DNA of 64,000 nt, from sequence record PQ390715.1, one strand, 5' to 3'. Every line of letters begins with the position of its first letter. Position 1 is the first letter of the stretch. The notes beneath the pieces are model-generated. The model had not been told where the DNA came from, did no database searches, and saw only the letters and a program-made list of their open reading frames with translations. Below are positions 5,682-46,719 of this stretch, piece after piece. A program made the position numbers and the translations under genes.

Positions 5682-5759
5682 TTTTATTTCCTCTTAGTAG
5701 GGGAAGATGTTTCCCCTTGATGTAAGTACTATAACAGTACTGAAAACTAAATGCAAGTA

Positions 5760-8575: not shown

Positions 8576-9112
8576 TTAAATCACCATAAAGAATAGATAG
8601 GTTACTAACAATGCCGCGATCAATGCACCGATCACCGCTGAACTGTAATAAGCTAATGATTTCATTTTTTAGCCTGGAAGTAATGTTTAATTTGTGCGGC
8701 GGTCAGTGCACAATTTCGCAGGAAGTTTTCTGTATAACTGCGGCGAGTACTGAAAGAGAATTGACCTTTGCCGTTGCCGATAGTAACATCAAACCGAGCG
8801 TTGTATTGTTTCATTTTGATTCTCCTTGTATCAGGGGAGAACCATTTCCCCCCTCTATGAAAACCATTATACAGTACTGAAAACTAATTGCAAGTACTAT
8901 TTTTTAGATTTACGCAAACTTTCTACCATCTCAGGAGTAAGGCCCGGCGGGTAGGAAACCACTTCATCAACGAAACGTAAAGGGAATACCCCAGCGAAAG
9001 GTGAACATGCTTTCTTGGTATTACTCTTTTTTGATGCTTTCATTTCATATTCCTTAATTAGTGGGGAGAATCATTTCTCCCCTTCATGTAAAACATTATA
9101 CGCGTTTAAAAA

Positions 9113-16380: not shown

Positions 16381-16509
16381 CGTTTTAATCTCTCGTAATG
16401 TGTAGCAGGAAGTGTTCCCGCTCTCGATGTAAAACATTATACGCTTTTTTCAGTACGGTGCAAGTACTTTCTACAAATACTTTTTAAAATAGTTTTCTTT
16501 CTATATAGG

Positions 16510-16601
16510 AGTACTATTATTCAGTACTATTATTCAGTACTATCATTCAGTACTGCAACCATCCAGGGGAACTATCTTTCTATATAGGGGAACTATCTTT
16601 C
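16510..16601. repeat. 4 x 13-bp AGTACTATYATTC tandem repeat plus 2 x GGGGAACTATCTTTC
   Basis: AGTACT at 16510, 16523, 16536, 16549; direct repeats at 16566 and 16587. Confidence 0.9.
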
Positions 16602-16766
16602 AGTACTGAATCAACCAAATCACTACTACACCCCATAAAACGGCCTCAGACGCATTCTAACGCATTAATACACCTAAGCTATACATTTGCACCATTCCAA
16701 TCATTCCAGGGCTTTACGGGCCGTTTAAACGCGTTAAATTATTTTCAATTATTTTGTTTTTAGGTA

Positions 16767-17066
16767 TTGACTTGATCCTGAAAAAGCGTATAATTACTAC
16801 ATAGACGCGAGAAAGCGGAAACCCCAGAGGGTGCGGAATTACGCCCAAAATTCAAGATATAAAAAAAGGATACACTCCCGCACCCTAGCAGGTAAACGCA
16901 CTTTCTCAGTACTGAAATATAGTACCATAGTCCGGCCCAGGATGGCAAGCAAATTAATTAAAACTTTTTTCATCCAGGGTATTGCTTTATTTTTCCAGTA
17001 CTGTATAATAGTTCCATCAAGTCGAGAAAGACTCAAGCCCACCGGGTGCATAGTTACGCCCAAAAT
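16767..17066. ncRNA. Family A elements, copies 8-10 (16767+, ~16869-16948-, 16982+)
   Basis: Promoters with CGC-GAGAAA-GCG and AGTC-GAGAAA-GACT hairpins and a GGGTGC core; the two + copies share TTACGCCCAAAATTCA. Confidence 0.5.
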
Positions 17067-17599
17067 TCAGTACTGAAAAAATTTTTAAAAATATCCGGCC
17101 AGGTCGTTGACATTGCCCCCAGTTTATAAGATAATGATTCCAGATTCAGAAAAATCTAACTACAGATACTGCGGGGAAACTATCCCCACGCGGTAGGGGA
17201 ACTATTGGAAAAACAAAATAAAATTTTGATTTAGCCGTCTATACTTCCAGCCATCCAGAAATCTAGCCGTTTAGCCGTCTAGATGGATAGCCATCTTTAC
17301 TTCCAGACTTCTGGAGGGCTAGACATATCTACGTCCAAAATCCATCCAGGGTAACTACACCCAAAATCCGTCAGTACTATACCATAGATCTATCTTTTGA
17401 AAGGGAGTATTCAGTACTGCCATCATAGCCCTCACTATGTTACCCTAGGAGGATGAAGACTATCATGTAGTACTGAATACTGTTAGAGGGAATCCACCAG
17501 CTTGTGCTGGTGGCATAATGCTTTAGATTAAAATCAGTACTGACACCATTCTGTTAATATCAGTACTGTTATTACAATTTTCATATGAGGTTCAAAAAG

Positions 17600-17725
17600 A
17601 TGTACCACCACAGGAGGAACTATCTTTTCTGTACTGTCTCACGACAGGAGGTAGAGTAAATGAATTGTTCGCAGCAACTCATCTCTCTATGTAGAACATT
17701 ATACAGTACTGAATCATAATGTCAA
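17600..17725 (-). ncRNA. Candidate ORF-less structured RNA with its own promoter
   Basis: TTGACA-16-TATAAT; ATGAGTTG/CAATTCAT stem; CTGTC-GTGA-GACAG GNRA hairpin. Confidence 0.45.
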
Positions 17726-18002
17726 TAACTTTCTTTCACCATTCAGTACTGATATTCTTGAGAACTACCCGTCTACAAACATCATTATATCCCACAAATC
17801 ATAAACGTCCCAACGTAAATTTCAACTTTCGAAGATCCAACTTTTATTTCATAGGTACTCCAAAATTTTTAGGATCGAGATTTAGGATGGAGTACTAACC
17901 AACTTTTTGCTGGAGCCTCAAGGGGTAATTGAATTTTACCCCGAAGGGTAAAAGGGTAATTGTAATTAAGGTGAAAGTAATAATTCAGTACTAATCATTG
18001 CG

Positions 18003-18270
18003 TGATTACTTTTGATTACATTTGATGTAATTTGCAAAATGGAAAAGGAGCTTGGAAACTACAAAGTACGGCAGACTTCCTCTGCCTACTTAGTGGCATA
18101 TCGACACCTTCAGTACTGAATACTTTTGGGGCAGTACTGAATCCTTCCCTAGCATTCTTGAGTAATCTTGTCTATAATAATCAGTACTGAATCATATATA
18201 ATCATTCTGTGATTCTACGGTGCTCATATAAATGTTTATATATGATTACTTATGACTACCTATGATTACG
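18003..18270. repeat. 10-bp-phased TGA(T/C)TAC repeats, two clusters
   Basis: At 18003 and 18013 (18023 degenerate), and at 18243, 18253, 18263. Confidence 0.7.
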
Positions 18271-18281
18271 GGGTTTAGCCT

Positions 18282-18366
18282 GGGGAGAATCCTAGTGATC
18301 GCATTTGTCCAGGCTGAATTTTAACAATTCGCCTGTACATAAAGGTTGTTCACTAGGAGCTTCCCC
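18282..18366. other. 85-nt imperfect rod-like inverted repeat
   Basis: GGGGA/TCCCC, TCCTAGTGA/TCACTAGGA, CAGGC/GCCTG and GAATT/AATTC arms around a central bubble. Confidence 0.7.
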
Positions 18367-18383
18367 TGTCTCTATGTGTTTAA

Positions 18384-20502
18384 TTACTTTCTATATATAA
18401 GCATTAAGATATAGTAGTACTGATTATACTGTACATTCTCTTTAATATTATAAGGGTCTATAGCAATCTCGGTACATCTGTTAAATGCATATCTATTAAA
18501 TGCCAGTGGAATTATAGATCTAATCCATACTTGTTCATTTTCTTTTAGTTTACTTATATAGAAGTTTTTATACATAGTATTCTCTATTAATTAATATGAT
18601 AGTACTAGTGTTAGTACTGAGCACAATTGTTCTTTATAGTTCTTATGGTATATAGAATCTTTTATGCACTCATTGAAGTGCCATAGGTATAATCTTGGGT
18701 CGCATTCTTTATATATTCTTACGGGGACGAATGTTAGTTTTCGTATATAGAATTCTTTATGTTCTTTATTCATATTAGTACCTGAATATAAGTAGGATTA
18801 TGTTATAGTACTGGTTAGTACTGCAATGATTCTCTATACATCGATTAACAGTTATGGAATAGCTATATCTGGCGTAAGCATTATCCAGGGGGATTTTACA
18901 TTGAGCACTTAGAGAAAGTACAGTAGGTAGTGTATTCAAATAGAAGTCTTTGTAATTATTCATACAGGAATAGTATACCTATGATGCCGGAGTACAGGTT
19001 AGTACTGTTACCATCTTCATTTGCGTTTAAAGTCATTTGAATACAATTATTGTAGCATACTCTGCCGAAAAATGTATTAGTACTTAAAGGTGGAGTAGTC
19101 CTTAGAAACATTTGTTCTGAGGGGCTTATGTATTTGGAGTAGAATTCTTTATGTTCTTTATTCATATTAGTTAGTGTCTGTATATAAGTAATAGTAAGAA
19201 TACGTACTGCACATCTTCATCTTTAGTATTGAGTACTGTACGTATTGCGTCATTAAACAAGAATATAGTACTTGGGTCATGAGAATTTAAAGGGGTTCTG
19301 GGTACGGCACATTTGTAGTTCCCTTTAACAAATTGTGTGTAGTATTCTCTATGCATATTAGTACCTATATATTAGGGCGATAATGTAGTACAATTCATAT
19401 GGAATGTAATTTGGGGTGATCGCACACTGTGTATGGTAAATGAATTGTTCGGTATTTTTCTTATCCTTGATATCTATTGGGATTAGTGGTATAAGCATTT
19501 GGGAGTTTAGATCGAGATGGCTTAAGTAGAATTCTTTATGCATATTGTTCTCTTAGAATACGAAAGCTAGGTACAGGGTATGATACAGTACTCGATGGTA
19601 GCTGTCATGATCTAGTATACATGCTTTAGTGCACATAGTAAAGTACACTTTATCGTTTTGTGCATTGATACCGCGAGGTTTATCTAATAGATTAGTACTG
19701 AGGTACATTGGGAAATATTTTGTGTAGTATTCTTTATGCATATTAGTACCTGAATATAAGTAGGATAGTGTTATATAGCTGGTCATAACTACTACTATTT
19801 TCTATACTTCGTTCTATGCAGTTATTGAATCCCAGTACTGCCAAATCGTTATCCATAGGGACTTTATATCTGGCGTAGTGTTCAAAAATGCTGGGGAGAA
19901 ATTGTGTGTAGTATTCTTTGTGCATATTAGTACCTATATATTAGTAAAAGGATGTGATACAGTACTCGATTATAGTCTTCAATATATATCGAGGATTTAG
20001 TGCACTGAATGAAGTAGTCTTTTTCGTAGTTTTTTTCTATACCCAATGGTACTGTTGGTACAAGGTGTTGGAGATACATTGGGAGTTTCTCTATGTAGTA
20101 TTCTATGTAGTATTCTTTGTGGTTATTCATATTATGTGTTATTTCGTGAAAACAAGGGTTAGTACTGCATAGTACAAGTCATACGTATCTTTAGGGTTAA
20201 TAGCACCTTTAATACATTCTTTCATTAATTCATTATAGATAATTTTAGTACTGAATGTATTGGATGTTACTATATCGGAATTAAGGTACGAGAGGTAGAA
20301 TTCTTTATAAGTATTCATATTAGTACCTGAATGTTAGCATTACTACGTAGTACAGCATATATGGATTATCATCGTATATGAGCGTGTACTTAGTACATTG
20401 TTGGAACATTATCTTTGCGTGATCTTTGATACCCAATGCAACGTTTGGTATATGGTGTTGTAGATGCATTGGGATTTTATCTTTGTAGTATTCTTTATAC
20501 AT
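18384..20502 (-). CDS. Eleven tandem ~60-aa paralogues: 18384-18575, 18591-18773, 18775-18963, 18956-19165, 19171-19356, 19358-19543, 19553-19741, 19743-19925, 19927-20130, 20139-20318 (manual), 20320-20502
   Basis: Shared M..(H/Y)K(E/D)(F/Y)Y start, central F..C, and Y...(L/I)L(L/I)(I/F)(Y/F)RY end; 1-2 nt gaps; repeated junction TATTAGTACCT. Confidence 0.85.
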
Positions 20503-21154
20503 AGTTTGAAATATACGTAATGAGGTGATGAAATTTCTTATCAGTACTGATAAGTTCCTGTACATGTTTTGTTAGATTGTACGCGTTTTTATAGAGTTCT
20601 GGATTATCGATTACAGTACTGTACATGAATTCTTCTTCTGGTGTTAATTCTTTGTTTTGTAGTTCTTTTAGGAATTGCAGTACTGTATCAGTTTCGTTAG
20701 TACGTTGCTTTTGGAAGAAGTGCATGTTATCGTGTATTTTTTCTGAACCCATGCAGTACATATCGCCGATTTGGAATTGTGCAGTACTGATATCATGGGT
20801 GCTATTACAATTCCCGAAGAAGTATACATTCCCGAAAGATAGAATTATAGTGCACGGGATATTATCCATGTGTATATAGATAGATGCATTCTTTAGTGCT
20901 TTTGTGCTGGTATTAGTACTCAATACTTTTAAATCAGTATTATAGATATTAATAAAAGCAAGAGCTATATTATTTTTCTTCAAGTACGATTTGAGGTTCT
21001 TAGATACGAGAACATTTCTGGATTTTTTCTTTTTATTTCGTTTCTTTAGTACATTTGGGTGATACGTATATGCTGGTGTAAAAGATTCTGCTTGAATACT
21101 GTTGAGGTATTTAAAGTGCTTAAGGTATTGTTTGCTGTGTGGATTAAGTTTCAT
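20495..21154 (-). CDS. Hypothetical 219-aa protein embedded in the small-paralogue array
   Basis: AAGGA RBS; no recognisable motif. Confidence 0.7.
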   Translation of the reverse strand: MKLNPHSKQYLKHFKYLNSIQAESFTPAYTYHPNVLKKRNKKKKSRNVLVSKNLKSYLKKNNIALAFINIYNTDLKVLSTNTSTKALKNASIYIHMDNIPCTIILSFGNVYFFGNCNSTHDISTAQFQIGDMYCMGSEKIHDNMHFFQKQRTNETDTVLQFLKELQNKELTPEEEFMYSTVIDNPELYKNAYNLTKHVQELISTDKKFHHLITYISNYV

Positions 21155-21164
21155 TTGGTTTCCT

Positions 21165-22309
21165 TTATATAGATGCCAGGGCAATGATTTCCCTGTAGGG
21201 ATTATCTTGTGTTAGTACAGCATAAATGCAGCTATTGAGATTAATATTTTTAGTACTTTTTGTTCCTAGTTTGTAGTACTTCACGAAGGTGTCGTACATG
21301 AAACGGTCTTTAATGCTTATGTGTTCTCTATAGAATTGTTGCATAGTATTCCTTACATAGAGATGAGTTTCAGTACATCAATATACATATAACGTTCAGA
21401 TGACTGTACACGGGTAGTGATAATCTCAATCGATATGTTTTTAATTAGAGGTGAAGATGATTGATGGTTCTGAATAAATGTGTGGTGCATACTTTGTTCT
21501 ATGTGGTTTAGTTTATTGAAGTAGTACTCAAAAGTGTTCATGTCTACCTTAGATTGAGATTAGTTTAAGTACTTCTCTGTACGTGTACTTTTCGTTTTGT
21601 GCTTCTACTGTACACGAGAGTAGATAACGTTTTTTATCTCTTTTGTTCCCGACTGTGTAGTACCTTTGGAATTTATTATAGTTGTATCTATCTTTGTGCT
21701 GGAGGTTATAGATATAGAATTCTTGCATAGAGTACCTTATATTGCTATCAGTTTGAGTACTTCAATATATGTGCGGTACTCTGCTTTAATTAAATTTGTA
21801 CACACTGTAAGGGAATTTCTTTGTATAAGTTTATTGCCGCTTTTATACGCATTTCTCCACACATAGAGATGAGATCTTTCAGGCATAGATAGTTTATTGG
21901 TATAGTACTCAAATGTATTCATATATTACCTCAAATAGAGATTAGTTTAAGTACTTCTCTGTATGTGTACTTTTCGTTTTGTGCATCTCTTGTGCTTGTA
22001 TATAGGTATCCTCGACGATATTTGTTGCTCCCGTTCTTGTAGTTGAATTCGAACTTATTGTAGATGAATCTATCGCCAGGCTGTAATTTACTTAAGTACA
22101 ATTCAATGCTCATAGTATTCTCTTTACATATCAATAAGTTTCAGTACTGCTCGGTACGTGTACTTAGTTGTCAGTGCTTCTTTAATAGAAATACAGAAGT
22201 AATGTTGTTTGTCTCTTATACTGCCGCGTTTGTAGTACCACACATGGGAGTTGTGACTGTACTTGTCTCTGTCGGATAGTTGTTGGTAGTAGTAGCTTAT
22301 ATGATTCAT
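21165..22309 (-). CDS. Six tandem ~60-aa paralogues, subfamily 2: 21165-21344 (manual), 21353-21541, 21549-21728 (manual), 21737-21922, 21931-22113, 22124-22309
   Basis: Shared C-terminal Y(T)YREVLKLISI; M..F.YY..KL start. Confidence 0.85.
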
Positions 22310-22361
22310 TATAATGTAATTAGCCTTACTATATTAAAGTACTCGGTCCCTGGTGTACCTT

Positions 22362-23187
22362 TTAGAACTTAAAGATGAGGTTCAGGATAGAGCGGTACTT
22401 AGTTTCAGGGAACTGATGTTCTATTGCATAACGTGTCACCATCCTGAAATCGTAATTATAATACAGATTATCCTTTCTCATAGGTGGTGCTAAAGAGAAT
22501 GATAGCTGTTCTTGTTTGGGTAGTTTACTACAATAGAAATCTTTATGATTATTCATAGAAATATATTAGTCCTATTAAACCTGAGTACATAATATTTTTG
22601 TTATTGCATTCGATTGCTTCTAGAGTACTACGTATACAATTATTAAAGCAATCTCTACCGAATTGAGTATTGGTACTTACAGGTGATACACTCCTTAGAA
22701 ACAATTGTTCTTCGTTGCTAAGGTATTTGGTGTAGAATTCTTTATGTTCAGTATTCATATTAGTACTCGATTAATAGGGTAAGGATGTAATAGTATTGCA
22801 TACATTCTACCCCTTGTAAAGCATTTCTTATGTTATTATTCCTGTACGAGTTCAGGAGTTTAGGGCTACGTTTGAGGTGTTTGAAATTAGTTTGTGTATG
22901 CAGTAGGCTTTCACGTAGACCTTTTGTTGGTAGTGCATCGATGTAGTACTGTTCGATATTCATATAGATAGCAGTACTAAGATTTTTGATAATTGTTTAT
23001 TGCTATCCCCGCAGATGTTGCTGTGTAAAATACTCACAATGAGGGTATCAATTGCATTGTTCATCATAAGGGTGCATCCTGGACTATTATAATTTTTTAG
23101 CTCAATTAGCCACGAACTATCCGCGAGAAATTCCCCGTACTCTAGTTCATTTAGAGTATTGAGGTAGTACTTAAGAGTATTTGTCAT
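22362..23187 (-). CDS. Four further small paralogues: 22362-22556, 22549-22758, 22760-22963, 22960-23187
   Basis: 22549 is a close paralogue of 18956 (EHKEFY.KY.S..EQ.FLR...P.STNT.FGR.C.NNCI). Confidence 0.8.
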
Positions 23188-23212
23188 GTGTAGTTCTCCT
23201 TATATTCCTTCT

Positions 23213-23241
23213 ATAGTACACCAGTACTGAAAGAATGTCAA
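23213..23241 (-). promoter_or_regulatory. Sigma70-type promoter of the small-paralogue operon
   Basis: TTGACA-17-TACTAT with AGTACT in the spacer. Confidence 0.75.
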
Positions 23242-23290: not shown

Positions 23291-24400
23291 ATGTTACCTT
23301 TTGGAAGAATGTTAAAGTATGGGAATGTAGCACCTGTACCCAAAAAAATAAAGAAAGTTATTGCAGGATATGATAATTTATATGTACTATATGGTGATGG
23401 ATCGCTATATGGTTGTGGAATCAATAACTATCAACAGTTAAATATTACTGGAACTACTACACAAAATAAATGGGTACTGATTACAAATGGCGTTAATAAT
23501 GCATGGGCTGGTGGATATAATATTTTATATTTTAAAGAAGATAAATTTATAATGCACGGAACTAATGTCTCATTAGGTTTAGGAAATAATACAATTCCAC
23601 TAGGTGGAGTAGATGTAACTTCTTCATTTCCAGATATATCTGATATTAAAATGATATCCATTGGTTTTGATTCAATGCACTATGTTAGTGCTGATGGTAA
23701 AATTGTATATGGAAGAGGTATGAACACAAATGGTTCTGTTGGTTCAGGTAGTACTTACTCACAGAGTACTTTTACTTCAGTACTGAATAATGGCACTAAT
23801 CAGGTTATTGATATATTTGGTAACGTTAATAATACAGTGCTTCTAACGTCAAATGGCGAGCTTCGTGCGTGTGGTACAAGTGCTTATGGTTCCATAGGAA
23901 ATGAAACTGGTAAGTGGACATCGTTTGGTTTAAAATTATCTGGCACTAAAATAATGGGTGGTAATGCGTATAGTACGCTTGCATATACAAATGCGGGAAT
24001 GTACCACACAGGGTGGCAGTTAAATGGGGAACTGGGAAATGGTTTAGATACTAACGTACAGGTATATCCATTTCAATTTAACTCTAAAACAATAGATAGC
24101 AAGATAGATAAAATTGCTAAATCATCATCTGGGTCATATGTTAATATGTACTCAACAACAGAAGGAAAGATATATACTACAGGTGCATATGGTAAAAACG
24201 GCTCAACTACTGCATTGAATTTGTTCACCAATACACTAACACTTGAAAATTACAATCCAGATGCCGCAGCGTTGTATACGTGCACAAACTTCAGTGTTGT
24301 ATATGATGGTAATGAAACTATTGCTGTAAGTGGTAGTCCTACATATGTACCAGGTGACGTTGCCGCAAATAGATGGACCACAATTCCATTACCCAAGTAA
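23291..24400 (+). CDS. RCC1/BLIP-II-like beta-propeller, copy 1
   Basis: G.N..GQLG.G-type repeats; MLPFGRM N-terminus. Confidence 0.85.
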   Translation: MLPFGRMLKYGNVAPVPKKIKKVIAGYDNLYVLYGDGSLYGCGINNYQQLNITGTTTQNKWVLITNGVNNAWAGGYNILYFKEDKFIMHGTNVSLGLGNNTIPLGGVDVTSSFPDISDIKMISIGFDSMHYVSADGKIVYGRGMNTNGSVGSGSTYSQSTFTSVLNNGTNQVIDIFGNVNNTVLLTSNGELRACGTSAYGSIGNETGKWTSFGLKLSGTKIMGGNAYSTLAYTNAGMYHTGWQLNGELGNGLDTNVQVYPFQFNSKTIDSKIDKIAKSSSGSYVNMYSTTEGKIYTTGAYGKNGSTTALNLFTNTLTLENYNPDAAALYTCTNFSVVYDGNETIAVSGSPTYVPGDVAANRWTTIPLPK

Positions 24401-24469
24401 TACGATGCCAGTACTTGATACTGGCTTTCTTATTTGTATTAAATATAGTATAATGATAAAGGAGGAACT

Positions 24470-25648
24470 ATGTTACCTTTTGGAAGAATGTTGAATTATG
24501 GAAATGAAGCACCGGGCGTACCAACACCAAAAGATTTCTTTTTGGATGTATCATCCGGCAAACCTACTATGTTGATGCTTTTGGATAACGGCGAAGTATG
24601 GGGTTGTAGTAATGATGGACAACTATTAGGTTTAAACACTACCGCGTCAGCATACGGTAAGCCATACTTTGTTATGGAAAATGTTAAGTTAATGTTCGCG
24701 TCAGTGTGGGGGACATTACTTATCACTAACGATAATAAAGTGAAGTACACTGGTAGACAAACCATGTTTAATGGTTCATCTAATTATTGGAGTACTTTTC
24801 AAGATTTTACAACGAAGTACACGACTGTTGGTATTGACATAAGTACTATAGAAAAAGTTGGATTCAATACTGGTACATTATTCCTACGCACAACTAATGG
24901 TGATTTATGGGGTCATGGAAATAACGCTAATGGTTATTTCGGAAAAGGAAATACCGTGGCGAATTACACACCAACCAAGATCAAGACTAATACATTAGAT
25001 TTTTGGTTAACTAATGGGAATGCAATTGTACAAACTGGCCCTAAAGAATTCTATGCTACTGGTGATAATTATTATTATCAAATGGGTGTTACGACTACTG
25101 GTAATATAACAACATGGACACAGATTTTTAAGGACGCTACTGATGATCCTGAGTTTGAATATAATGCAATGCGAACAAGTCAAGCAACATTAATACTTTA
25201 CGGTAAAGGAACTACATTCTACGCAAGTGGGAGAAACTATATGAGTTCATGGGGTGTATCTGGAGCACCAGTGGATGTTAATACTACACTATATAAAGGT
25301 ACGTTACCATTTGTACCCGGGGATTTAACATATTTTTATGCTGGTCGAGAACAAGCATATTGGACTAACTTAATCATTGATACTAATGGAGTTCTGTACA
25401 TATCTGGAACAAAAGATGGGGGTGGTGGTTCAAATGCACCTATATTTGAAGTATTACCAACCCCAAGTAGTGCAGTTGGATTCAAATGTGGTACAGCAAC
25501 ACGTTCTTATGCTATAATGGATTGTACTGGCAATCAATTTATGTACGCACGTGGTACAGCTTTGTCAGACCCTGCTGGCTTTACACCAATGAGTACACCA
25601 TTAAATCATACATGGACACACATAACAGATTTTAAATTTAACCGATAA
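24470..25648 (+). CDS. RCC1-like beta-propeller, copy 2
   Basis: As copy 1. Confidence 0.85.
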   Translation: MLPFGRMLNYGNEAPGVPTPKDFFLDVSSGKPTMLMLLDNGEVWGCSNDGQLLGLNTTASAYGKPYFVMENVKLMFASVWGTLLITNDNKVKYTGRQTMFNGSSNYWSTFQDFTTKYTTVGIDISTIEKVGFNTGTLFLRTTNGDLWGHGNNANGYFGKGNTVANYTPTKIKTNTLDFWLTNGNAIVQTGPKEFYATGDNYYYQMGVTTTGNITTWTQIFKDATDDPEFEYNAMRTSQATLILYGKGTTFYASGRNYMSSWGVSGAPVDVNTTLYKGTLPFVPGDLTYFYAGREQAYWTNLIIDTNGVLYISGTKDGGGGSNAPIFEVLPTPSSAVGFKCGTATRSYAIMDCTGNQFMYARGTALSDPAGFTPMSTPLNHTWTHITDFKFNR

Positions 25649-25719
25649 TATTATGCCAGTACTTGATACTGGCATTTCTTTTTGTATTAAATATAGTATA
25701 ATGAATAAAGGAGGGAAAT

Positions 25720-26922
25720 ATGTTACCTTTTGGAAGAATGGTTAAGTACGCAAATATTGCACCAGGTCCAGAACCTGTAGAGTTCTCAGATGTTTTACAA
25801 CAACATTATACAAACTGTATGTATCTCCATAACCCAACTAATACTTTATATGGTTATGGTAGTAATAACTTTTATCAATTTGGTCTTGGGAATTCAGCAG
25901 CAGTTTCGTCATTTACAGTACTTGCAAGGAACTGTGCAGCCTTTTGGCTTGGTGTTCAAGGTTCGTTGATGATTGATTTGGATAATAAAATATACTACAC
26001 TGGGTCGGTTGGTGCATTTTCTGATTATGGAGATGCAACACCTGTTAATGGTTATTTGACAACATGGACTGATGTTACTGTTGCATTTAATAAAATAGGT
26101 GTTATGGCTAATATGATCAAGAGTGTATATATAGGTGAAAGTACTAGAATATTATTAACCGATGGTAGAGTAATTGCGTGTGGAAGAAATACCAATGGTG
26201 AATGTGGCTCTGGTAATAAAAATTCCATCCCTACACTCACAGTTATGACTAATATGGGTGAAGTTACACATATGGCATGTTCATTACAAGGAACGCACTA
26301 TATCAAATCAAATAAAGATGCATGGTTTTGTGGTAAGGATAACTTTGGTGAAAGTGGATGTGGTGGTAGTTCTGTTGTATATTTGAACAAATTCGTGATT
26401 AGTAATGTAGAACATATTAGTACTACATACGATGTTACTTGGTGGTTTACTACTGGTGGGTCTGTATATTATAGCGGGGTTAACAGTACTGGACAAGCTG
26501 GTAATGGTACGACTACATCGGTAAATCAGCTAACACCAATTAGGAACACATCGGTCACGGTTGATGTAAGTAAGTACAGTACTTTTATTTGTCCAAGTAA
26601 TATGGGAAATGCATCAATTGGTGCACCTATGGCACAATACGCACCATATGTTAGAAGTAGTGGTGCTAACTCATATGGTCAAGAAGGTAATGGAACTAAT
26701 ACATTAGTTAGAACTTGGAATATTTTTAATCTTAGTGCAATAAGTGGTGGTTATGACAATGTTCTTATGGCATCTAAAGATTGGAGCAGAACCATAATAA
26801 TTACTAAAGATTATAAATTATATGCATGTGGTGGCTGGAATGGAAATGGTGGTAGATTACCTAATGGTACTTATAGTATTACTACACTAACATTAATGCC
26901 AACGCAGTTATGGCAACAATAG
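25720..26922 (+). CDS. RCC1-like beta-propeller, copy 3
   Basis: GRNTNGECGSG and GANSYGQEGNG repeats. Confidence 0.85.
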   Translation: MLPFGRMVKYANIAPGPEPVEFSDVLQQHYTNCMYLHNPTNTLYGYGSNNFYQFGLGNSAAVSSFTVLARNCAAFWLGVQGSLMIDLDNKIYYTGSVGAFSDYGDATPVNGYLTTWTDVTVAFNKIGVMANMIKSVYIGESTRILLTDGRVIACGRNTNGECGSGNKNSIPTLTVMTNMGEVTHMACSLQGTHYIKSNKDAWFCGKDNFGESGCGGSSVVYLNKFVISNVEHISTTYDVTWWFTTGGSVYYSGVNSTGQAGNGTTTSVNQLTPIRNTSVTVDVSKYSTFICPSNMGNASIGAPMAQYAPYVRSSGANSYGQEGNGTNTLVRTWNIFNLSAISGGYDNVLMASKDWSRTIIITKDYKLYACGGWNGNGGRLPNGTYSITTLTLMPTQLWQQ

Positions 26923-26930
26923 GAGGGAAT

Positions 26931-28040
26931 ATGTTACCTTTTGGAAGAATGATTAGGTATGGAAATATTGTCCCTGGTCCTAAAAAAATAATTAAAGTTG
27001 GTGCTTCTACCCAAGGCCAATTCTTATTGACTGATTCACATGATTTATATTACATAGGTAGAAATCAAGGTGGTGAATCTGGAAATGGTAATACCAACAC
27101 GGTGTCTTCGTGGACATTAGTAAGTGCAGATGTTTCTAATTTTTTCGTGGGTGATCGTACACTTGTTATTATTAAAAATGATAATACGATATGGACATCA
27201 GGTCAAACGTACTGGTTCTCATCTTCTACAACTACTTCTTACAGTACTGTATTAGTTGAAAGGACTAGTTGGTTTACCAATGCTATACCAGTCAGTGAAA
27301 TTGCTAATATTGTATGCACAAATGGTTTAATATTTGTACTTAGCACTAATTCAGTACTCTATGGTGCAGGAGATAATGGATATCGTGGTTCTTTGGGTAT
27401 TGGTTCCTCATCAATTTACACATTAACTCAATGTGCTACGAACGTTCGTAAAGTAATGACCAATGCGAATGATAGTATGTATCTTACATTAGATAATAAG
27501 CTATATAGTTCTGGATGGAATAGTAGTGGGCAGCATGGTACGGGGAACCAAACACAAATTAACACTTGGGGATTGCGTAGTTCTGGTGTAATCGATGCAG
27601 CCATTGGTGGTAATGCATTAAATTACTATAATGGTACATCATATTTCGTATGTGGTCAAACTCCAAACTTTCTTAGTTCAGGTACGACTACATTCCGTGC
27701 AGTTCCTGTAAGTACTTTGCCTAATAGTTCTCCGTTGTTTATGACGAATTCACCTGCATTAAATACTGCTACACAAATGGTAATTACTAGTACATATCAA
27801 AAGGGTGTTGGGGCGAACCGTGGTTTGGGATTAAACAATTCTCAAACTGGTGCTATATATAGTGCTACCAATTTACAATTACCCGTTGAAGTTAGTGAGA
27901 TTAGGGATGTTCTTTTTAGTGATGGTTTGACATCGATATTAACCAAAAATGGAGATGTGTATAGTACTGGATCGTATTACGCCATTCCAGGTGCAATCGA
28001 GGATGTTGCAGTCTTTACTAAAATTGATTTACCAAAATAA
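26931..28040 (+). CDS. RCC1-like beta-propeller, copy 4
   Basis: GWNSSGQHGTG repeat; start at MLPFGRM. Confidence 0.85.
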   Translation: MLPFGRMIRYGNIVPGPKKIIKVGASTQGQFLLTDSHDLYYIGRNQGGESGNGNTNTVSSWTLVSADVSNFFVGDRTLVIIKNDNTIWTSGQTYWFSSSTTTSYSTVLVERTSWFTNAIPVSEIANIVCTNGLIFVLSTNSVLYGAGDNGYRGSLGIGSSSIYTLTQCATNVRKVMTNANDSMYLTLDNKLYSSGWNSSGQHGTGNQTQINTWGLRSSGVIDAAIGGNALNYYNGTSYFVCGQTPNFLSSGTTTFRAVPVSTLPNSSPLFMTNSPALNTATQMVITSTYQKGVGANRGLGLNNSQTGAIYSATNLQLPVEVSEIRDVLFSDGLTSILTKNGDVYSTGSYYAIPGAIEDVAVFTKIDLPK

Positions 28041-28110
28041 CATAATGCCAGTACACTGTACTGGCTTTCTTATTTGTATTAAATATAGTATAACAAATAA
28101 AGGAGGGAAT

Positions 28111-29250
28111 ATGTTACCTTTTGCAAGAATGGTTAAGTACGGGAATATCGCACCTGAACTGATTCTACCTAAAAACAGGTTACAATGTTCTGCTGATGCC
28201 AAATTTTATTTACACACAAATGGCAATCTATATTGGTTTGGTTCTTCAGCATATGGACAAAGTGGTAATGGTTCATTGGACTCTTCAACTGAATGGACTC
28301 TTGTCAACTCAAATGTTACACGATATTGGGGTGGGGTACAAGGAACAATTGCTATAAAGAAAGATGGTACTATTTGGTACACTGGTAGACGTACTGTTAT
28401 TCCAATACTATCTTCAAACACTAACGGCGTTTGGGTTGATATAACACAGAACTTTACTGATTTCGGTGTCAGTGCAGATGATATTGATAGTGTTGTGATA
28501 TCTTCGTGTATGCGTGTATTTTTAAAAAATGGAAAGTGGTTCTACTGTGGTGCTGGTACTGGTGGTGTTTTTGGGAATGGATCAACTTCAAGCGTTTCAC
28601 GATTCACCTATAGTACAATAGAAAATGTTATCAGTGCTGGTTGTGCAATATATAGTACTGGATTAGTACTAAATGATGGTTCATATTGGTATGCAGGTAG
28701 AACGTTTGTATCAGGAACGACGACACAAAACTTGCTCACATTTACACAAGATACTTCGATTAGTAATGCAATTAAAGCAGTCAATACAAATGAAACTTCT
28801 TATATATTTCTTAATGATGGTAATGTTAAAGTTGCATCTATTAACGACTATGGACAAGCAGGTACAGGAAATAGGTCAGTAGCCCCAATGAGTACATTAA
28901 TTCCAAATTTATCATTCCAAGGAGAAGTGGAGTTGGTGGGTGAGCTTGGGACAAACCTTACCGGACCATCCTGTATAATTAATAATAATAATAAGTTATT
29001 TTCATGTGGCCTTAATTCAAATGGTCAATGTGGTATTGGTACAACTGATATGTATATAACATCATTCGCTGAAATGGATCTTACTGCATTAGAAGGTAGT
29101 AATCTTAGTAGTTTTTGTAAGAGCTATTCTTATACGATGTTAGTTGACGAATATAATAATTTATACACATGTGGTGTACCCAATCTTACTGGAATGTCTT
29201 CAACTACTGTACCAACAAGGGTTCCTGATTCACTTCTACCGTGGAAATAA
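28111..29250 (+). CDS. RCC1-like beta-propeller, copy 5
   Basis: GLNSNGQCGIG repeat; start at MLPFARM. Confidence 0.85.
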   Translation: MLPFARMVKYGNIAPELILPKNRLQCSADAKFYLHTNGNLYWFGSSAYGQSGNGSLDSSTEWTLVNSNVTRYWGGVQGTIAIKKDGTIWYTGRRTVIPILSSNTNGVWVDITQNFTDFGVSADDIDSVVISSCMRVFLKNGKWFYCGAGTGGVFGNGSTSSVSRFTYSTIENVISAGCAIYSTGLVLNDGSYWYAGRTFVSGTTTQNLLTFTQDTSISNAIKAVNTNETSYIFLNDGNVKVASINDYGQAGTGNRSVAPMSTLIPNLSFQGEVELVGELGTNLTGPSCIINNNNKLFSCGLNSNGQCGIGTTDMYITSFAEMDLTALEGSNLSSFCKSYSYTMLVDEYNNLYTCGVPNLTGMSSTTVPTRVPDSLLPWK

Positions 29251-29321
29251 TATAATGCCAGTACACTGTACTGGCTTTCTTATTTGTATTAAATATAGTA
29301 TAATGAATAAAGGAGGGAAAT

Positions 29322-30470
29322 ATGTTACCTTTTGTAAGAATGATGAATTATGGGAATATTGCCCCTGGTAAGGATAGGCGTTTTAAAATATATTCAAGTG
29401 ATTCTATGTATCTTCATGATACTTATACTAATAAGTTGTATGCATCTTCTGCGACGAATTGGGGTACTGGTACAGGTGTAGCATCGAGTAAATTTATTCT
29501 TTGTGCAGAGAATGTTAAACGAGTTCTATTGGAAGATAACAGTAGTAGTTGTCAATTGTATGAAGAGAAAGGTACTGGAAAAGTTTTTATCACTGGTAAC
29601 ACGAAGGCATTCACTGGTGTAACTGATACAAAAACTTTGTGGACGGACTGTACTACGTGGATAACATCAGGTGGTATTAATGTTTCTGATATAAAATACA
29701 TGAGTAGTTTTAATGATATGAAGGTGAATTTGATAACAAACGATGGTACGTTGTATTGTTGTGGAGTTAACAATAACTCGAACCTATCATCATTTGGTGA
29801 TGGTACAAACATTAATTCTTTTAACACATTCAAAAGGGTAGATACTATAACTTCGGTTAAAAAGGCAGTTGGTAACATATACCTAAAAGAAGATAATACT
29901 TTATGGGGTTGTGGTTTTAACTATTACTATCAGTTAGGTACAGGTAATCAAACTTCTATTACTGGGGTGACGATGATTGCTTCGGATGTTATAGATTTTG
30001 ATGTAAGTTATCAAAGTACATTTTTTATTAAATCGGATAATAATTTGTACGCTTGTGGTAAACAGTTCGGTGCACAATACGGGAACGAATTTGGCACAGG
30101 TGGTACTTCTTCATCTACCGATATACAATACAAAACTCCGACATTATTGAGTTCGGGAGTTTATACTCTATATACGTGTGTTAGTAACATGGCATCACAT
30201 ATAGCTAAAGGTGATGAAGTTCTATACGCATCTGGGTCGAATAGATTTGGTCAATTAGGTGTTGGTAATAATATTAATCAGTACTCATATACTCCTTCGT
30301 ATACTTCGTTTAATAGTTCGTGTAATTTGGTACGCACTCCATCTGGTTCACTTATACTTACGGACACTGAGCAATTATATTATTGTGGGTATGCTATGGT
30401 AGTAATGGGGGGAATTGCTGGACAAAACATTCTTAGTTATACAGAAGTTGATATGTCATTTATACAATGA
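29322..30470 (+). CDS. RCC1-like beta-propeller, copy 6
   Basis: GFNYYYQLGTG and GSNRFGQLGVG repeats. Confidence 0.85.
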   Translation: MLPFVRMMNYGNIAPGKDRRFKIYSSDSMYLHDTYTNKLYASSATNWGTGTGVASSKFILCAENVKRVLLEDNSSSCQLYEEKGTGKVFITGNTKAFTGVTDTKTLWTDCTTWITSGGINVSDIKYMSSFNDMKVNLITNDGTLYCCGVNNNSNLSSFGDGTNINSFNTFKRVDTITSVKKAVGNIYLKEDNTLWGCGFNYYYQLGTGNQTSITGVTMIASDVIDFDVSYQSTFFIKSDNNLYACGKQFGAQYGNEFGTGGTSSSTDIQYKTPTLLSSGVYTLYTCVSNMASHIAKGDEVLYASGSNRFGQLGVGNNINQYSYTPSYTSFNSSCNLVRTPSGSLILTDTEQLYYCGYAMVVMGGIAGQNILSYTEVDMSFIQ

Positions 30471-30541
30471 TTTAATGCCAGTACAGAGTACTGGCTTTCT
30501 TATTTGTATTAAATATAGTATAATGAATAAAGGAGGAATTT

Positions 30542-31732
30542 ATGTTACCTTTTGTAAGAATGATGAATTATGGGAATATTGTCCCAGTACCACTTCAAAT
30601 TAAGAAAATAATCCCAACTGATTTAGATGTTGTTGTTCTGTATACGGATGGTCAACTATATGCACGTGGGAATAATAGTTTTGGGAAATTTGGTAGGGGA
30701 AACAACACTGCATTAAAATCATGGACATTAATTAGAGAAAACGTTAACGATTGCTGGGTTACACAAGGAACTTTATTAGTAAAAGATAATGACTCAAATT
30801 ATTTTTATTGTGGATATGGTGATCATGTTGGTTTACCAACTAGTACTACTACGTTTTTAAGTTATAACCAATATATTGAAAATTTGTACACGCAAAGTTC
30901 AAGTACTTCAATTAAACAGATGTATGGAGGTACTACGTGGTTTACGGTATTAATGGATAATAATACAATATGGAGTACTGGTTGGAGTGGGGCTAGACAA
31001 TTCGCTGATGGTACTGGTAGTACTCAACAAATAACAGATGGATCATTTGTAAAAGCTGTCACGCCTAATGTTGATATTGCACAAATACAGTCAACAAATA
31101 ACTGTGTAATGTTTTTTGATACACAAAATAATTTATATATTGGTGGTGGTACGTCAGGTATAAGTACCAGTACCACATGGACACCATTTAATGAATATAC
31201 TTTATATAAACCAAGTACAACATACACAAAAACGTTACAATACACTGGATGCTCAAGTGGTGCAGTCAGTGCTTTGGTTGAGAATCCAAGTTCTGGTGCA
31301 CGTCAGTTTCTAGTTGGTGGTTTAGCGAGTAATGGTGCATGGGGTAACAATACCACAACCAGTTCGGCACTTGCTGTATTAGGGAGCAATAGTACGACAT
31401 TACCAACTGGAACTTTGTATTCAATTCATACAGGATACCCAACACAATCTAGTATACTAGTTACGAGTACTGGTGTATATGCAACTGGTTTAAATGCCAG
31501 TAGTTATGCTGGTTCATTGGGTATTGGTACTAGTGCAACTGTTGGTAAGTTTACTGCATGTCCAATGCCTACACAAATAACATATTCTATGTATGATAAA
31601 ATAAAAATATATCGCGGTTCGTATCGTACTTTTCTAACTGCTGATATGAAAAATATATATTCAACCGGAACTTATGATGATGGTGGTCCTAGTACAACTA
31701 GATATGTACTAGATACACCCCGACAATTATAA
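30542..31732 (+). CDS. RCC1-like beta-propeller, copy 7
   Basis: GNNSFGKFGRG repeat. Confidence 0.85.
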   Translation: MLPFVRMMNYGNIVPVPLQIKKIIPTDLDVVVLYTDGQLYARGNNSFGKFGRGNNTALKSWTLIRENVNDCWVTQGTLLVKDNDSNYFYCGYGDHVGLPTSTTTFLSYNQYIENLYTQSSSTSIKQMYGGTTWFTVLMDNNTIWSTGWSGARQFADGTGSTQQITDGSFVKAVTPNVDIAQIQSTNNCVMFFDTQNNLYIGGGTSGISTSTTWTPFNEYTLYKPSTTYTKTLQYTGCSSGAVSALVENPSSGARQFLVGGLASNGAWGNNTTTSSALAVLGSNSTTLPTGTLYSIHTGYPTQSSILVTSTGVYATGLNASSYAGSLGIGTSATVGKFTACPMPTQITYSMYDKIKIYRGSYRTFLTADMKNIYSTGTYDDGGPSTTRYVLDTPRQL

Positions 31733-31804
31733 TATAATAGCCAGTACTCAGTACTGGCTTTTCTTTTTGTATTAAATATAGTATAACAAATAAAGGAGGG
31801 AATT

Positions 31805-32984
31805 ATGTTACCTTTTGGAAGAATGATGAATTATGGGAATATTGCCCCTGGCAAAGATACTGTTGTTAAAATTAATAGTGATGAAAATTCAATAAGCGTA
31901 TTATACAGTGATGGGTCATTATATATGCGTGGACGGAAACCAATTATCAAAAATGGGAGTTACTGGTTCATCTTTTTTAGATAGATGGGTTTTATGTCCT
32001 TATAGTGTTGATGATTTCTGGAGTTCTTTATATTGTACTATAATTAGAACAAAACAAGGGGAATTGTACTATAGTGGAACTAACTCAGTTTTTGGTATAT
32101 CATCTTCTGTTTCAACATGGACTCGTTGTGAATCATATTTTGGATCTATTTCTCCGAGTTCAATAAAAGATATAAAAATAACATCATCAACCAGTACTAA
32201 CAATTCCATGTTAATACTAACAAGTGACGGTCAGTTATATGGTATAGGCATGAATGGTGCAAGTGAATTGGGTACAGCAACTACACCAATTACATCTCCA
32301 CTCTTAATAGACACTAGTGTATCTGCAATTGCATCTAGTGAAATGAGCAGAAACTTTCACTATATAAAAGATGGTATATATTATCGTTGTGGTGAGAATA
32401 CTTTTTATCAATTAGGAACCGGTGATAATAATCCTATTACTACTTTTACTGCATTGAATCTTGGTAGTTCTCATGTAATTGCAGTACAAGCTACACGATG
32501 GGTAACACGTTTGATTGTTCAAAGTAGTACATCTGCTTTGTCTTTAATGGCGGCTGGTTGGAACACACAGTTGACTATAGGTGGTTCTGAAAATACTGCT
32601 ATAATAAGGTCATCATTTACTACAAATCCCTATACCGATATAACAGCAAATTCATTCGATAAACTTTCACCAGTATCCTATGTTAATGCAATAAAATCCA
32701 GTACTAACATTATTAATACGAATGGTAAGGGATATAATTCTAATGGTGCTGGATTAGGCCGCAACGCATTCTCTGGGAATTATGGTTCAATATTACCAAT
32801 AGAATTCTTTGATGATAGTGTTGACTTATCACATGTTGAGTGGTTTGGTACGATTGGTAATGGTTCAGTATCGGTAGTTAGTATAGGTGAGGATTTATAC
32901 TGGACTGGAAACCCTGGGTATTTTACTGAACAAGGTGAGACTGGATATATATATAAATTCAAAAAGTGCATTCCTTTTAGATAA
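31805..32984 (+). pseudogene. RCC1-like copy 8, +1 frameshift near 31937-31939
   Basis: MLPFGRM frame stops at 31984; the propeller continues in the next frame; removing one A from CGGAAAC restores it. Confidence 0.8.
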
Positions 32985-33055
32985 ACACAATGCCAGTACT
33001 TGATACTGGCTTTCTTATTTGTATTAAATATAGTATAATGAATAAGGAGGGAATT

Positions 33056-34198: not shown

Positions 34199-34268
34199 AA
34201 TTATGCCAGTACAAAGTACTGGCTTTCTTATTTGTATTAAATATAGTATAATGAATAAGGAGGGAATT

Positions 34269-35448: not shown

Positions 35449-35458
35449 GGAGAAAATT

Positions 35459-36628: not shown

Positions 36629-36700
36629 ATTTTATGCCAGTGCCTTGTACTGGCATTTTTTTGTCCTAAATATAATAACGATTTACATTTGGAGGATACA

Positions 36701-46642: not shown

Positions 46643-46719
46643 GGTAGTTCCTCGATTGTAGGGATGAGAAGTTCATCCCCCTTGATAAGCATTATACAGT
46701 ACTGAATGTGTTTGTCAAC

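Follow-up and report, generated by a model that had tools for sequence, protein, structure and literature searches.

A tandem family of 21 small, predicted four-helix proteins in the jumbo coliphage SHEFM2K, a candidate repertoire for host takeover or counter-defence

What purpose is served by 21 small genes that stand in tandem in a giant phage? The locus lies in the window, the whole 64,000-nt stretch of DNA that was analysed (bases 62001-126000 of Escherichia phage SHEFM2K), which matches PQ390715.1 at 100%. SHEFM2K is a giant Escherichia coli phage of 348 kb, a 121Q/PBECO4-type Asteriusvirus. The original prediction described one early operon of hypervariable paralogues on a small scaffold, and took their N-termini to resemble the capsid-targeting signal of the T4 internal proteins. 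The features of the locus are as follows.

23213..23241, minus strand: sigma70-type promoter, TTGACA, 17-nt spacer with TCAGTACTG, TACTAT (scan, 10/12 matches)
23191..23200, minus strand: strong ribosome-binding region with AAGGAG before m01, conserved in relatives
22960..23187, minus strand: m01, 75 aa, first operon gene, borderline family member, present in all relatives
22760..22963, minus strand: m02, 67 aa, divergent member, 4-nt overlap with m01
22549..22758, minus strand: m03, 69 aa, subfamily A, phrog_11711, paralogue of m18 (59% identity)
22362..22556, minus strand: m04, 64 aa, subfamily A, paralogue of m19, 8-nt overlap with m03
22308..22337, minus strand: weak promoter-like site TTAATA-18-TATAAT in the 52-nt gap (scan)
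22124..22309, minus strand: m05, 61 aa, subfamily B, basic (pI 9.4)
21931..22113, minus strand: m06, 60 aa, subfamily B, start as annotated
21737..21922, minus strand: m07, 61 aa, subfamily B, missing in 121Q, slurp01, CRJP21 and phAPEC6
21549..21728, minus strand: m08, 59 aa, subfamily B
21353..21541, minus strand: m09, 62 aa, subfamily B
21165..21344, minus strand: m10, 59 aa, subfamily B
20495..21154, minus strand: 219-aa gene, phrog_29152, embedded in the array, unrelated to the small proteins
20320..20502, minus strand: m11, 60 aa, subfamily A, 8-nt overlap with the 219-aa gene
20139..20318, minus strand: m12, 59 aa, subfamily A, divergent (A-profile E 5e-17)
19927..20130, minus strand: m13, 67 aa, subfamily A
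19743..19925, minus strand: m14, 60 aa, subfamily A, member modelled by AlphaFold2
19553..19741, minus strand: m15, 62 aa, subfamily A
19358..19543, minus strand: m16, 61 aa, subfamily A
19171..19356, minus strand: m17, 61 aa, subfamily A
18956..19165, minus strand: m18, 69 aa, subfamily A, duplicate of m03, missing in SP27 and 121Q
18775..18963, minus strand: m19, 62 aa, subfamily A, duplicate of m04, 8-nt overlap with m18
18591..18773, minus strand: m20, 60 aa, subfamily A
18384..18575, minus strand: m21, 63 aa, subfamily A, last array gene
18070..18086, minus strand: weak terminator-like hairpin ~300 nt past m21 (6-bp stem, poor T run), a possible operon end

The 21 genes are real, and together they make up a tandem multigene family of this jumbo coliphage. 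All 21 predicted ORFs (59-75 aa each) are present on the minus strand between 18384 and 23187, filling 4026 of the 4804 nt, and the three that had escaped a 60-aa cutoff (20139-20318, 21165-21344 and 21549-21728) are real, each of 59 aa and all annotated in GenBank. Every one of the 21 frames is intact here, and in 11 other genomes their homologues are intact as well. Junctions between the ORFs measure −8 to +15 nt, with the sole exception of the 52 nt between m04 and m05. Shine-Dalgarno-like AGG, GGA or GAG is found at −16 to −5 in 15 of the 21 members, and at six A-type junctions, those feeding m12, m14, m15, m17, m19 and m20, the AGG of the next gene doubles as an Arg codon in the C-terminus of the upstream one. 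The claim of a single operon of paralogues holds for the tight packing of the ORFs, but not for their continuity, which the 219-aa gene interrupts. This gene occupies a mid-array position in every relative and occurs in the same phages only; it has no Pfam or PDB match and no relationship to the small array proteins, and its AlphaFold2 model (pLDDT 37.7) is unusable.

The promoter lies 25 nt upstream of the m01 ATG, and across 11 related genomes its −35 hexamer is invariant and its −10 reads TAC(T/A)AT. It belongs to a class (TTGACA, a spacer ending in TCAGTACTG, TATAAT) that recurs on the small-gene strand; TCAGTACTG is found between −35 and −10 in the array promoter and at least five others. 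Early timing is suggested because a host-type sigma70 promoter is what is expected of early genes, which lends support to the early reading of the original prediction; in the related phage CBB, RpoD-like promoters likewise cluster before short ORFs taken as early genes (PMC5259590). The array and the 219-aa gene would thus be transcribed early in infection as one tightly packed operon, successive genes being translated in a coupled manner through overlaps or 1-15-nt spacers. Translational coupling under one sigma70 promoter had been predicted as well; the promoter itself is conserved, whereas coupling and the singleness of the promoter are read from spacing only.

The relationships among the genes are not equally close. 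Searching the 21 ORFs against each other with phmmer gave 75 directed matches, compared with 0-1 in ten shuffled sets, and sequence comparison demonstrably groups 19 of the 21 as homologous, 13 in subfamily A and six in subfamily B. The two subfamilies align profile to profile over their full length (E 1.2e-4, 53 columns). Against the family HMM, m02 scores 16.0 bits, a value reached by 0 of 1000 shuffles (maximum 11.1; p<0.001), and is by this measure a significant outlier within the family. By contrast, m01 scores 9.2 bits, equalled by 2 of 1000 shuffles, and hhalign (E 0.029) aligns its N-terminus alone, so that its link to the other members would be weak and borderline. The profile of PHROG 11711, a family without a named function, matches the 13 members of subfamily A (best E 1.2e-27) and none of the other eight; the GenBank record cites it for nine of the 13.

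"Hypervariable" proves apt for the paralogues within the array, which share 9-59% identity (median 21%), but not for orthologues of different phages, which share 60-100%. Variation is unevenly spread along the protein, as had been noticed: the commonest residue of a column has on average a share of 0.52 in the first 12 columns, 0.28 in the middle and 0.47 in the last 12; one Tyr is invariant among array members, and the frequent central Cys is found in 12 of 21. Pooled over orthologues, pN/pS is 0.48 (ends 0.36, middles 0.60), which is relaxed for phage genes. The ratio stays below 1 even in the variable middles and therefore gives no blanket sign of an arms race.

In the predicted fold, the conserved ends belong to the hydrophobic core. 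The AlphaFold2 model of m14 (pLDDT 94.1, pTM 0.78) is a four-helix domain with helices at 3-7, 12-18, 27-42 and 46-58, in keeping with the single small scaffold that had been proposed, and hydrophobic residues make up 91-100% of the conserved columns, which are spaced as in a helix. In the model, the hydrophobic core is shown to be built from an N-terminal aromatic pair, a central Phe/Cys helix and a Leu/Ile-rich C-terminal helix; the helix 1 motif comprises the invariant Tyr and a neighbour that is 99% aromatic or hydrophobic. Free variation is seen in helix 2, in the long loop and on those faces of helices 3 and 4 that are exposed. Each gene product is a soluble protein of ~7 kDa, predicted to form a single four-helix domain. 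Foldseek found no structural neighbour of the m14 model in the PDB (best E 3.5, with no immunity protein listed) or in BFVD, so the structure offers no functional hint and no assignment to a known unrelated family was made. No member matches Pfam or NCBIfam, the 219-aa gene likewise lacks any domain in these databases, the PDB sequence search of the members gave no named match, and PADLOC returned only one match, at chance level. The marks of an anti-CRISPR-like locus, kinship to a known inhibitor family or a helix-turn-helix regulator gene next door, were thus not seen in these searches. The four-helix small protein of the array is previously undescribed.

The family is confined to 121Q/PBECO4-type phages, with 36 clusters among 1.84 billion proteins, and is absent from bacterial genomes save as phage contigs. 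Across 12 genomes the array holds 14-21 copies, with 46 sequence types in all, and cassette maps show near-identical phages differing by gain or loss of cassettes, a behaviour shared with accessory host-interaction loci. Traces of duplication include the two-gene pair m03-m04/m18-m19 (m03 against m18, 88 bits by phmmer), a 246-nt DNA repeat, D2, at m03, and an extra m02 paralogue in slurp01, phAPEC6, WPEC5 and fEgEco12. Repeats of 60-70 nt lie at the junctions, where the DNA is the best-conserved stretch, and unequal recombination at these repeats could make the array grow and shrink. As a separate observation on its composition, the word AGTACT is 13 times commoner in the window than expected, and in the array, where 1.5 copies would be expected, there are 34, spread over all three codon frames.

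The explanation that best fits these observations, to which a probability of roughly 45% is given, is that the array encodes diversified small binders, made early, not packaged and acting in the cytoplasm for host takeover or counter-defence. The proteins would work in the infected cell as a repertoire of binders, each presenting a different surface aimed at host targets, and would stay out of the virion; function and timing are here inferred from sequence. A more specific form, in which a new four-helix scaffold is present 14-21 times, every copy has a host target of its own, and unequal recombination at the conserved junctions reshuffles the set from isolate to isolate, is put forward tentatively.

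Among the alternatives, a partnership with the neighbouring RCC1-like proteins is unlikely. The array always adjoins an array of RCC1-like genes, and in all genomes examined, that of a divergent species and a metagenome contig among them, the two stand head to head, separated by an intergenic region of 103 nt. RCC1-like neighbours are present among the phAPEC6 virion proteins and both families vary in copy number. In this view the small proteins could assist the 12 divergently encoded RCC1-like virion proteins in folding or assembly, or serve them as adaptors or regulators, and the paralogues of the two families may be roughly matched. The copy numbers differ here, however (21 small genes against 12 adjacent RCC1-like genes), and a host-type promoter precedes the small genes, while late expression would be expected of structural genes. 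Moreover, a helper of a fibre-like protein usually has its gene directly downstream of that of its client.

That the proteins bind nucleic acid or modulate transcription, acting on phage or host DNA or on RNA polymerase, is improbable to a similar degree. A basic pI (9.2-9.6) and central loops rich in Lys and Arg mark subfamily B and several members of A, and there is a possible link to the AGTACT/CAGTACTG words that saturate the region and sit in promoter spacers; the excess of AGTACT in window and array and the recurrence of TCAGTACTG in the spacers would fit. Yet neither sequence nor fold indicates a helix-turn-helix, ribbon-helix-helix or other DNA-binding family, the pI spans 4.7 to 9.6 across members, and a monomeric four-helix bundle of 60 aa, as modelled, would have no obvious DNA-reading element. 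The motif link is one of co-location only.

Quite unlikely, too, is a bank of immunity-like or exclusion proteins for competition with other phages or bacteriocins, directed against incoming toxins or nucleases or against superinfecting relatives, comparable to the orphan immunity arrays of bacteria. Small all-helical proteins, a multi-copy array and cassette turnover between close relatives are what it would lead one to expect, and its logic is close to that of the cytoplasmic binders, the target alone differing. Nevertheless, the fold matches neither four-helix immunity proteins nor any other PDB entry, there is no cognate toxin gene in the locus, and the restriction of the family to phages, phage contigs in bacterial genomes included, also counts against it.

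The reading raised at the outset, T4-style internal proteins that are targeted to the capsid, cut at the N-terminus and injected to block restriction, has become very unlikely. It draws on the small, diverse and clustered proteins, with an N-terminal motif that includes Glu, and on the T-even internal proteins, likewise a diverse set of anti-restriction, defence-countering proteins (PMC3012670); in addition, phAPEC6 heads hold an inner body of unassigned composition (PMC7247149). Published virion proteomes nevertheless speak against packaging and injection. Array products gp540c-548c are absent from the 62 virion proteins of phAPEC6, for which the search database covered only eight of the 18 array ORFs; nor does any of six strings derived from members occur among the 49 of JP4, whose array is 98.5% identical in DNA and whose gel bands span 18-385 kDa. 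The neighbouring RCC1-like proteins, by contrast, are present. Proteins of 7 kDa could have been missed, though detection extended to proteins of 4.7 kDa and of 86-89 aa. The MNTYKEFY-like motif, for its part, does not fare well as a targeting signal: it is helix 1 of the predicted fold and carries the invariant core Tyr, and hence would not be a removable leader, its loss being expected to break the domain. The targeting peptide is the only element shared by T-even internal proteins, and IPI* is of alpha/beta type, with helices flanking its two beta sheets (PMC3012670), whereas the array members are homologous end to end and modelled as all-alpha. Kinship with T4 internal proteins was rejected on searches of Pfam, PHROGs, NCBIfam and PDB sequences and folds, none of which gave a named match, and the pattern of an internal-protein locus was set aside on the end-to-end homology. 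A sigma70-type promoter alone was seen at the array; the T4-type late octamer (as in PMC5259590), the consensus of which may not be that of this genus, occurs twice in the window and nowhere in or near the array.

Scarcely tenable is the view that runaway tandem duplication left the ORFs as by-products without function, their frames open by chance or through DNA-level constraints (AGTACT, junction repeats): AGTACT in all frames, the conserved junction DNA and the relaxed pN/pS are compatible with it, but the frames are intact throughout, pN/pS lies under 1 and falls further at core positions, the hydrophobic pattern of the core persists at paralogue identities of 9-59%, the m14 model is very confident, and the strong promoter and ribosome site are conserved.

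The repertoire of early cytoplasmic binders can be set beside several known systems. PHROG 11711 covers subfamily A; it does not capture subfamily B, m01 or m02, and carries no function, structure or remark on tandem organisation. In the suspected early regions of Rak2-like jumbo phages (for example CBB_390-546 of phage CBB), RpoD-like promoters also precede short hypothetical ORFs, read as serving early host takeover (PMC5259590). Those of CBB, however, are a mixture of unrelated short ORFs, whereas here one promoter precedes 21 copies of a single predicted fold, and the family is found in 121Q/PBECO4-type phages only. The T-even internal-protein locus, with IPI, IPII, IPIII and their variants, similarly encodes small, clustered and diverse phage proteins with an N-terminal motif in common; they are otherwise unrelated and abundant in the virion, unlike the array members, which share a whole 60-aa domain, are absent from two virion proteomes, are modelled with four helices instead of helix-flanked beta sheets, and match them in neither sequence nor fold. 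Small four-helix inhibitor and immunity proteins are of similar size, all-alpha, with a conserved core and a variable binding surface, although Foldseek retrieved none from the PDB. Finally, the multigene families of large DNA viruses and the takeover modules of large phages expand by tandem paralogy and change in copy number between close isolates, in accessory genome regions generally linked to host interaction; their proteins, hosts and sizes are unrelated, and the analogy concerns the evolutionary mode only. If the more specific form is true, in which each copy has its own host target, the array would be a hitherto unrecognised phage repertoire for counter-defence or host takeover, and would correspond in phages to the multigene families that large DNA viruses of eukaryotes carry.

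The 64-kb window is a 100% match to bases 62001-126000 of Escherichia phage SHEFM2K (PQ390715.1, 348,006 bp), a 121Q/PBECO4-type jumbo myovirus that falls within the genus Asteriusvirus according to related records. The 21 small ORFs put forward in the original prediction are all present, with the bounds given there, on the minus strand at 59-75 aa, and the three 59-aa ORFs that it had added are real. In GenBank they correspond to M2K_0226 to M2K_0247, labelled 'hypothetical protein' throughout, with PHROG 11711 cited for nine. The features that frame the locus are as follows.

18384-23187, minus strand, array of 21 small ORFs, numbered m01 (promoter-proximal) to m21
20495-21154, minus strand, unrelated 219-aa gene between m10 and m11
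23291-37853, plus strand, twelve tandem RCC1-like genes of 298-433 aa, all phrog_4219

All 21 ORFs start with ATG and 19 end with TAA. Gene junctions measure -8, -4, +1 (six times) or +5 to +15 nt, the sole exception being a 52-nt gap between m04 and m05, and an AGG/GGA/GAG element lies at -16 to -5 for 15 of the 21 members. At six junctions of one subfamily (subfamily A, feeding m12, m14, m15, m17, m19, and m20), this element doubles as the AGG codon for the penultimate Arg of the upstream gene, so that the terminal Arg-Tyr-stop is used both by the protein and for starting the following gene. From this arrangement, we infer translational coupling of successive array genes. The 219-aa gene, which the original prediction does not mention, is packed as tightly as the array itself: 10 nt separate it from one neighbor, and it overlaps the other by 8 nt. 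That its product is made of fused small units was considered and rejected; the protein has no relation to the array proteins. It belongs to phrog_29152, has a run rich in Lys around residue 40, and is confined to the phages that carry the array; an IMG/VR query with it returned the 121Q genome only. It has no match in Pfam or, by sequence profile search, in the PDB, and its AlphaFold2 model (pLDDT 37.7) is unusable. No tRNA was found in the window by ARAGORN, and no match to it was found in Rfam.

That the small proteins are related is evident from all-against-all phmmer comparison, which gave 75 directed hits among the 21 ORFs versus 0-1 in ten shuffled sets. The hits fall into two blocks, subfamily A (m03, m04, and m11-m21; 13 genes) and subfamily B (m05-m10; 6 genes), which join end to end in a profile-profile comparison (E 1.2e-4 over 53 columns), and single members from relatives also cross-match the profile of the other subfamily. 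Against a profile built leaving out m01, m02, and their relatives, m02 scored 16.0 bits, reached by none of 1000 shuffles (maximum 11.1), and m01 scored 9.2 bits, reached by 2 of 1000. By these sequence comparisons, 19 members are thus certain, with m02 a significant outlier and m01 a plausible but weak member. The median identity between paralogues is 21% (range 9-59%); the most similar pair, m03/m18, marks together with m04/m19 a two-gene duplication that is also visible in the DNA, where a 246-nt repeat has 74% identity. The described pattern of conserved ends, variable middle, and frequent central Cys holds: the commonest residue has a mean share of 0.52 in the first 12, 0.28 in the middle 40, and 0.47 in the last 12 well-occupied columns; one Tyr never varies among the 21 members, one Leu is present in 20, and the central Cys column holds Cys in 12 of the 21 members and 55 of the 93 sequences of the wider family. 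The profile searches called for at the outset gave no function-bearing relative. The only family matched was phrog_11711, by 13 of the 21 ORFs, subfamily B having no PHROG, and scans of all 21 members against Pfam, NCBIfam, and PADLOC yielded chance-level matches only.

The expectation of one small scaffold is borne out at the level of structure prediction. AlphaFold2, run on m14 of subfamily A with a 93-sequence alignment, gave a model with mean pLDDT 94.1 and pTM 0.78, with helices at residues 3-7, 12-18, 27-42, and 46-58. The conserved columns are 91-100% hydrophobic, are spaced as helix faces, and comprise the aromatic pair of helix 1, the following Leu, two positions in helix 3 (a Phe and an Ile/Leu), and five in helix 4, while entropy reaches 2.8-3.6 bits in helix 2, the 19-26 loop, and the start and exposed positions of helix 3. 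In the model, the 'conserved ends' are thus the first and last helices, which belong to a single hydrophobic core, and the ~7-kDa protein of the family is confidently predicted to be a four-helix domain with a conserved core and a variable surface. Foldseek found no neighbor of the m14 model in the PDB (best E 3.5) and only the family's own members in BFVD; PDB sequence searches with the family and subfamily B profiles were empty.

The array was compared in 11 further genomes (121Q, SP27, slurp01, CRJP21, phAPEC6, JP4, WPEC5, fEgEco12, TH47, the divergent OR670491.1, and one metagenome contig), in which orthologues are 60-100% identical. Pooled orthologues show pS 0.079 and pN 0.038, a ratio of 0.48, with 0.36 in the conserved ends, 0.60 in the middles, and no overall excess of replacements, which indicates purifying selection on the members, relaxed in the variable part. 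Copy number ranges from 14 to 21 among the 12 genomes, with 46 sequence types at 72% identity. The outermost genes, m01 and m02 on the promoter side and m21 on the other, are stable among the ten 121Q/PBECO4-type genomes, and the 219-aa gene sits mid-array in all 12, but inner cassettes are gained or lost even between genomes ~99% identical overall. The best-conserved DNA is a 60-70-nt stretch spanning each gene junction (62-80% identity, spaced 184-200 nt), which would be the natural substrate for unequal recombination. The 21-member profile matched only 36 clusters, all of 57-69 aa, among 1.84 billion representative proteins, and a word-indexed search of 5.8 billion clusters returned 53 proteins, on contigs of ~340-385 kb or short metagenome fragments. 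The two most divergent members traced share the same synteny, with RCC1-like genes facing a small-gene array that holds a 224-aa gene in its middle. In the databases searched, the family is therefore found only in the 121Q/PBECO4-type phage lineage.

The array was said to be headed by a sigma70 promoter, and such a promoter is indeed there: across the 11 genomes aligned, its -35 hexamer never varies and its -10 hexamer reads TAC(T/A)AT. Its spacer carries TCAGTACTG, and the recurrence of this word directly abutting TATAAT marks out a class of promoters on the strand of the small genes, with sigma70-type hexamers, in which TTGACA (or TTGCA) is followed by ~7 nt, TCAGTACTG, and TATAAT. The array promoter departs from this pattern in having 3 additional bases in front of TACTAT.

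23241-23213, minus strand, array promoter TTGACA-17-TACTAT, followed by AAGGAG and then the m01 ATG
17698-17725, minus strand, class site at 17712, perfect TTGACA-16-TATAAT
46680-46710, minus strand, class site at 46705, behind TTGACA/TTGCA
62035-62065, minus strand, class site at 62061, behind TTGACA/TTGCA
8855-8885, minus strand, class site at 8880, behind TTGACA/TTGCA
18086-18070, minus strand, weak terminator-like site downstream of the array

Variant forms of the class lie at 5743 and 14971. Many further TCAGTACTGA palindromes occur outside the promoter context and may be binding sites. No terminator-like site was seen inside the array on the coding strand, and in the related phage CBB, RpoD-like promoters before short ORFs have been read as marking an early region (PMC5259590). 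Together with the conserved promoter, these points make early transcription of the array by the host polymerase, as one operon, a reasonable inference; a literature search found no Asteriusvirus transcriptome.

The array is a lineage-specific tandem family of real genes, tightly packed, headed by a conserved sigma70-type promoter, and subject to cassette turnover between close relatives. Its genes are probably expressed early and translated in a coupled manner, and their products probably act in the cytoplasm. Most tentatively of all, the members may be diversified binders of host targets, serving takeover or counter-defence.

Several other readings have been weighed. The array proteins could be partners of the RCC1-like proteins, whose gene run starts 103 nt from the first array ORF and is transcribed divergently. 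This synteny is conserved, the pairing of the two families being kept in every relative examined, and the RCC1-like homologues of phAPEC6 (gp003-010, gp549, and gp551) are virion-associated by mass spectrometry. A partnership is nevertheless considered unlikely. Around the two families, plus-strand GC skew flips from negative to positive at ~18 kb and back at ~38 kb; the array and the RCC1-like genes, on opposite strands, both lie in positive skew, which is thus not a simple reflection of transcription direction in this region. Downstream of the array, ~1.9 kb (16438-18383) has few short predicted ORFs, higher G+C, many TCAGTACTG copies, and a 13-nt tandem repeat at 16496-16554; in relatives, the equivalent ~2 kb is annotated with no or only few very short genes.

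Equally unlikely is a role as nucleic-acid or transcription factors, for which the basic members and the AGTACT-rich setting speak. AGTACT occurs 288 times in the window versus 22 expected from base composition (13-fold), most densely in 1-24000, and is the sole strongly enriched palindromic hexamer (runner-up 2.8-fold); CAGTACTG occurs 65 times versus 1 expected. The excess is kept in relatives (103 versus 5.4 expected at the divergent OR670491.1 locus), and no mention of it was found in the literature. The conserved ends are not only a protein motif that spells AGTACT, because the word occurs in all three codon frames of the array ORFs (8/8/12), and that explanation was rejected. Tyr codons TAC:TAT stand at 92:56 in the small genes (18384-23187) and 37:104 in six RCC1-like genes (23291-31732), a reversed choice between neighboring families that fits the GTAC/AGTACT excess of the small-gene region. 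Over the whole window, GATC is low (131 versus 208 expected), and the T4-type late-promoter octamer (PMC5259590) is rarer than expected (2 versus 14 from shuffles, near 52.5-53.2 kb on the minus strand).

A function in immunity or exclusion appears slightly less probable again.

The analogy with T4 internal proteins, that is, injected proteins with an N-terminal capsid-targeting signal, was tempting but is unsupported. According to a review of the T4 head, the head holds about 1000 internal-protein molecules, the targeting sequence is all that T-even internal proteins have in common, and mature IPI* consists of two beta sheets flanked by helices (PMC3012670). By contrast, the array proteins are homologous throughout, are predicted to be all-alpha, and have an N-terminal motif that would form part of the hydrophobic core. 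No named relative was found in PHROGs, Pfam, NCBIfam, or PDB sequences, nor did the fold comparison with the PDB match one. The virion proteomics that had been suggested as a check is available for two close relatives. The 62-protein phAPEC6 list, which includes a 4.66-kDa protein and eight RCC1-like proteins, lacks gp540c-548c, the annotated array genes, although that annotation is incomplete and small proteins are easily missed. The JP4 array matches that of SHEFM2K at 98.5% DNA identity, with orthologues 94-100% identical in protein, and the JP4 list of 49 proteins, with ones of 86 and 89 aa among them, contains none of six member-derived strings, small proteins being hard to detect. The late-promoter octamer, which may not be that of this genus, lies far from the array at both of its sites. 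Gappy as each line is, together they make the injected-protein reading distinctly unlikely. Least probable of all is that the ORFs are functionless duplicates, given their signature of purifying selection.

The papers searched on Sharanji, JP4, fEgEco12, phAPEC6, and CBB contain no description of the array, its subfamilies, fold, or dynamics, and the family and fold are new. Jumbo phages consist mostly of genes without an assigned role, and here 21 of them come down to a single fold, promoter, and evolutionary mechanism, making the locus a small and clearly bounded object for structural and expression studies. Should the members bind host proteins, they would constitute a natural library on a 60-residue scaffold and a marker of phage adaptation to different E. 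coli strains. Two genome-wide signals have also been exposed that may govern early transcription in the genus, namely the AGTACT excess and the promoter class with a fixed spacer word. Among known systems, PHROG 11711 is the sole membership, for 13 members only; in the way it works, the array most resembles early accessory gene clusters in large phages, and its mode of evolution is nearest to that of multigene families in large DNA viruses.
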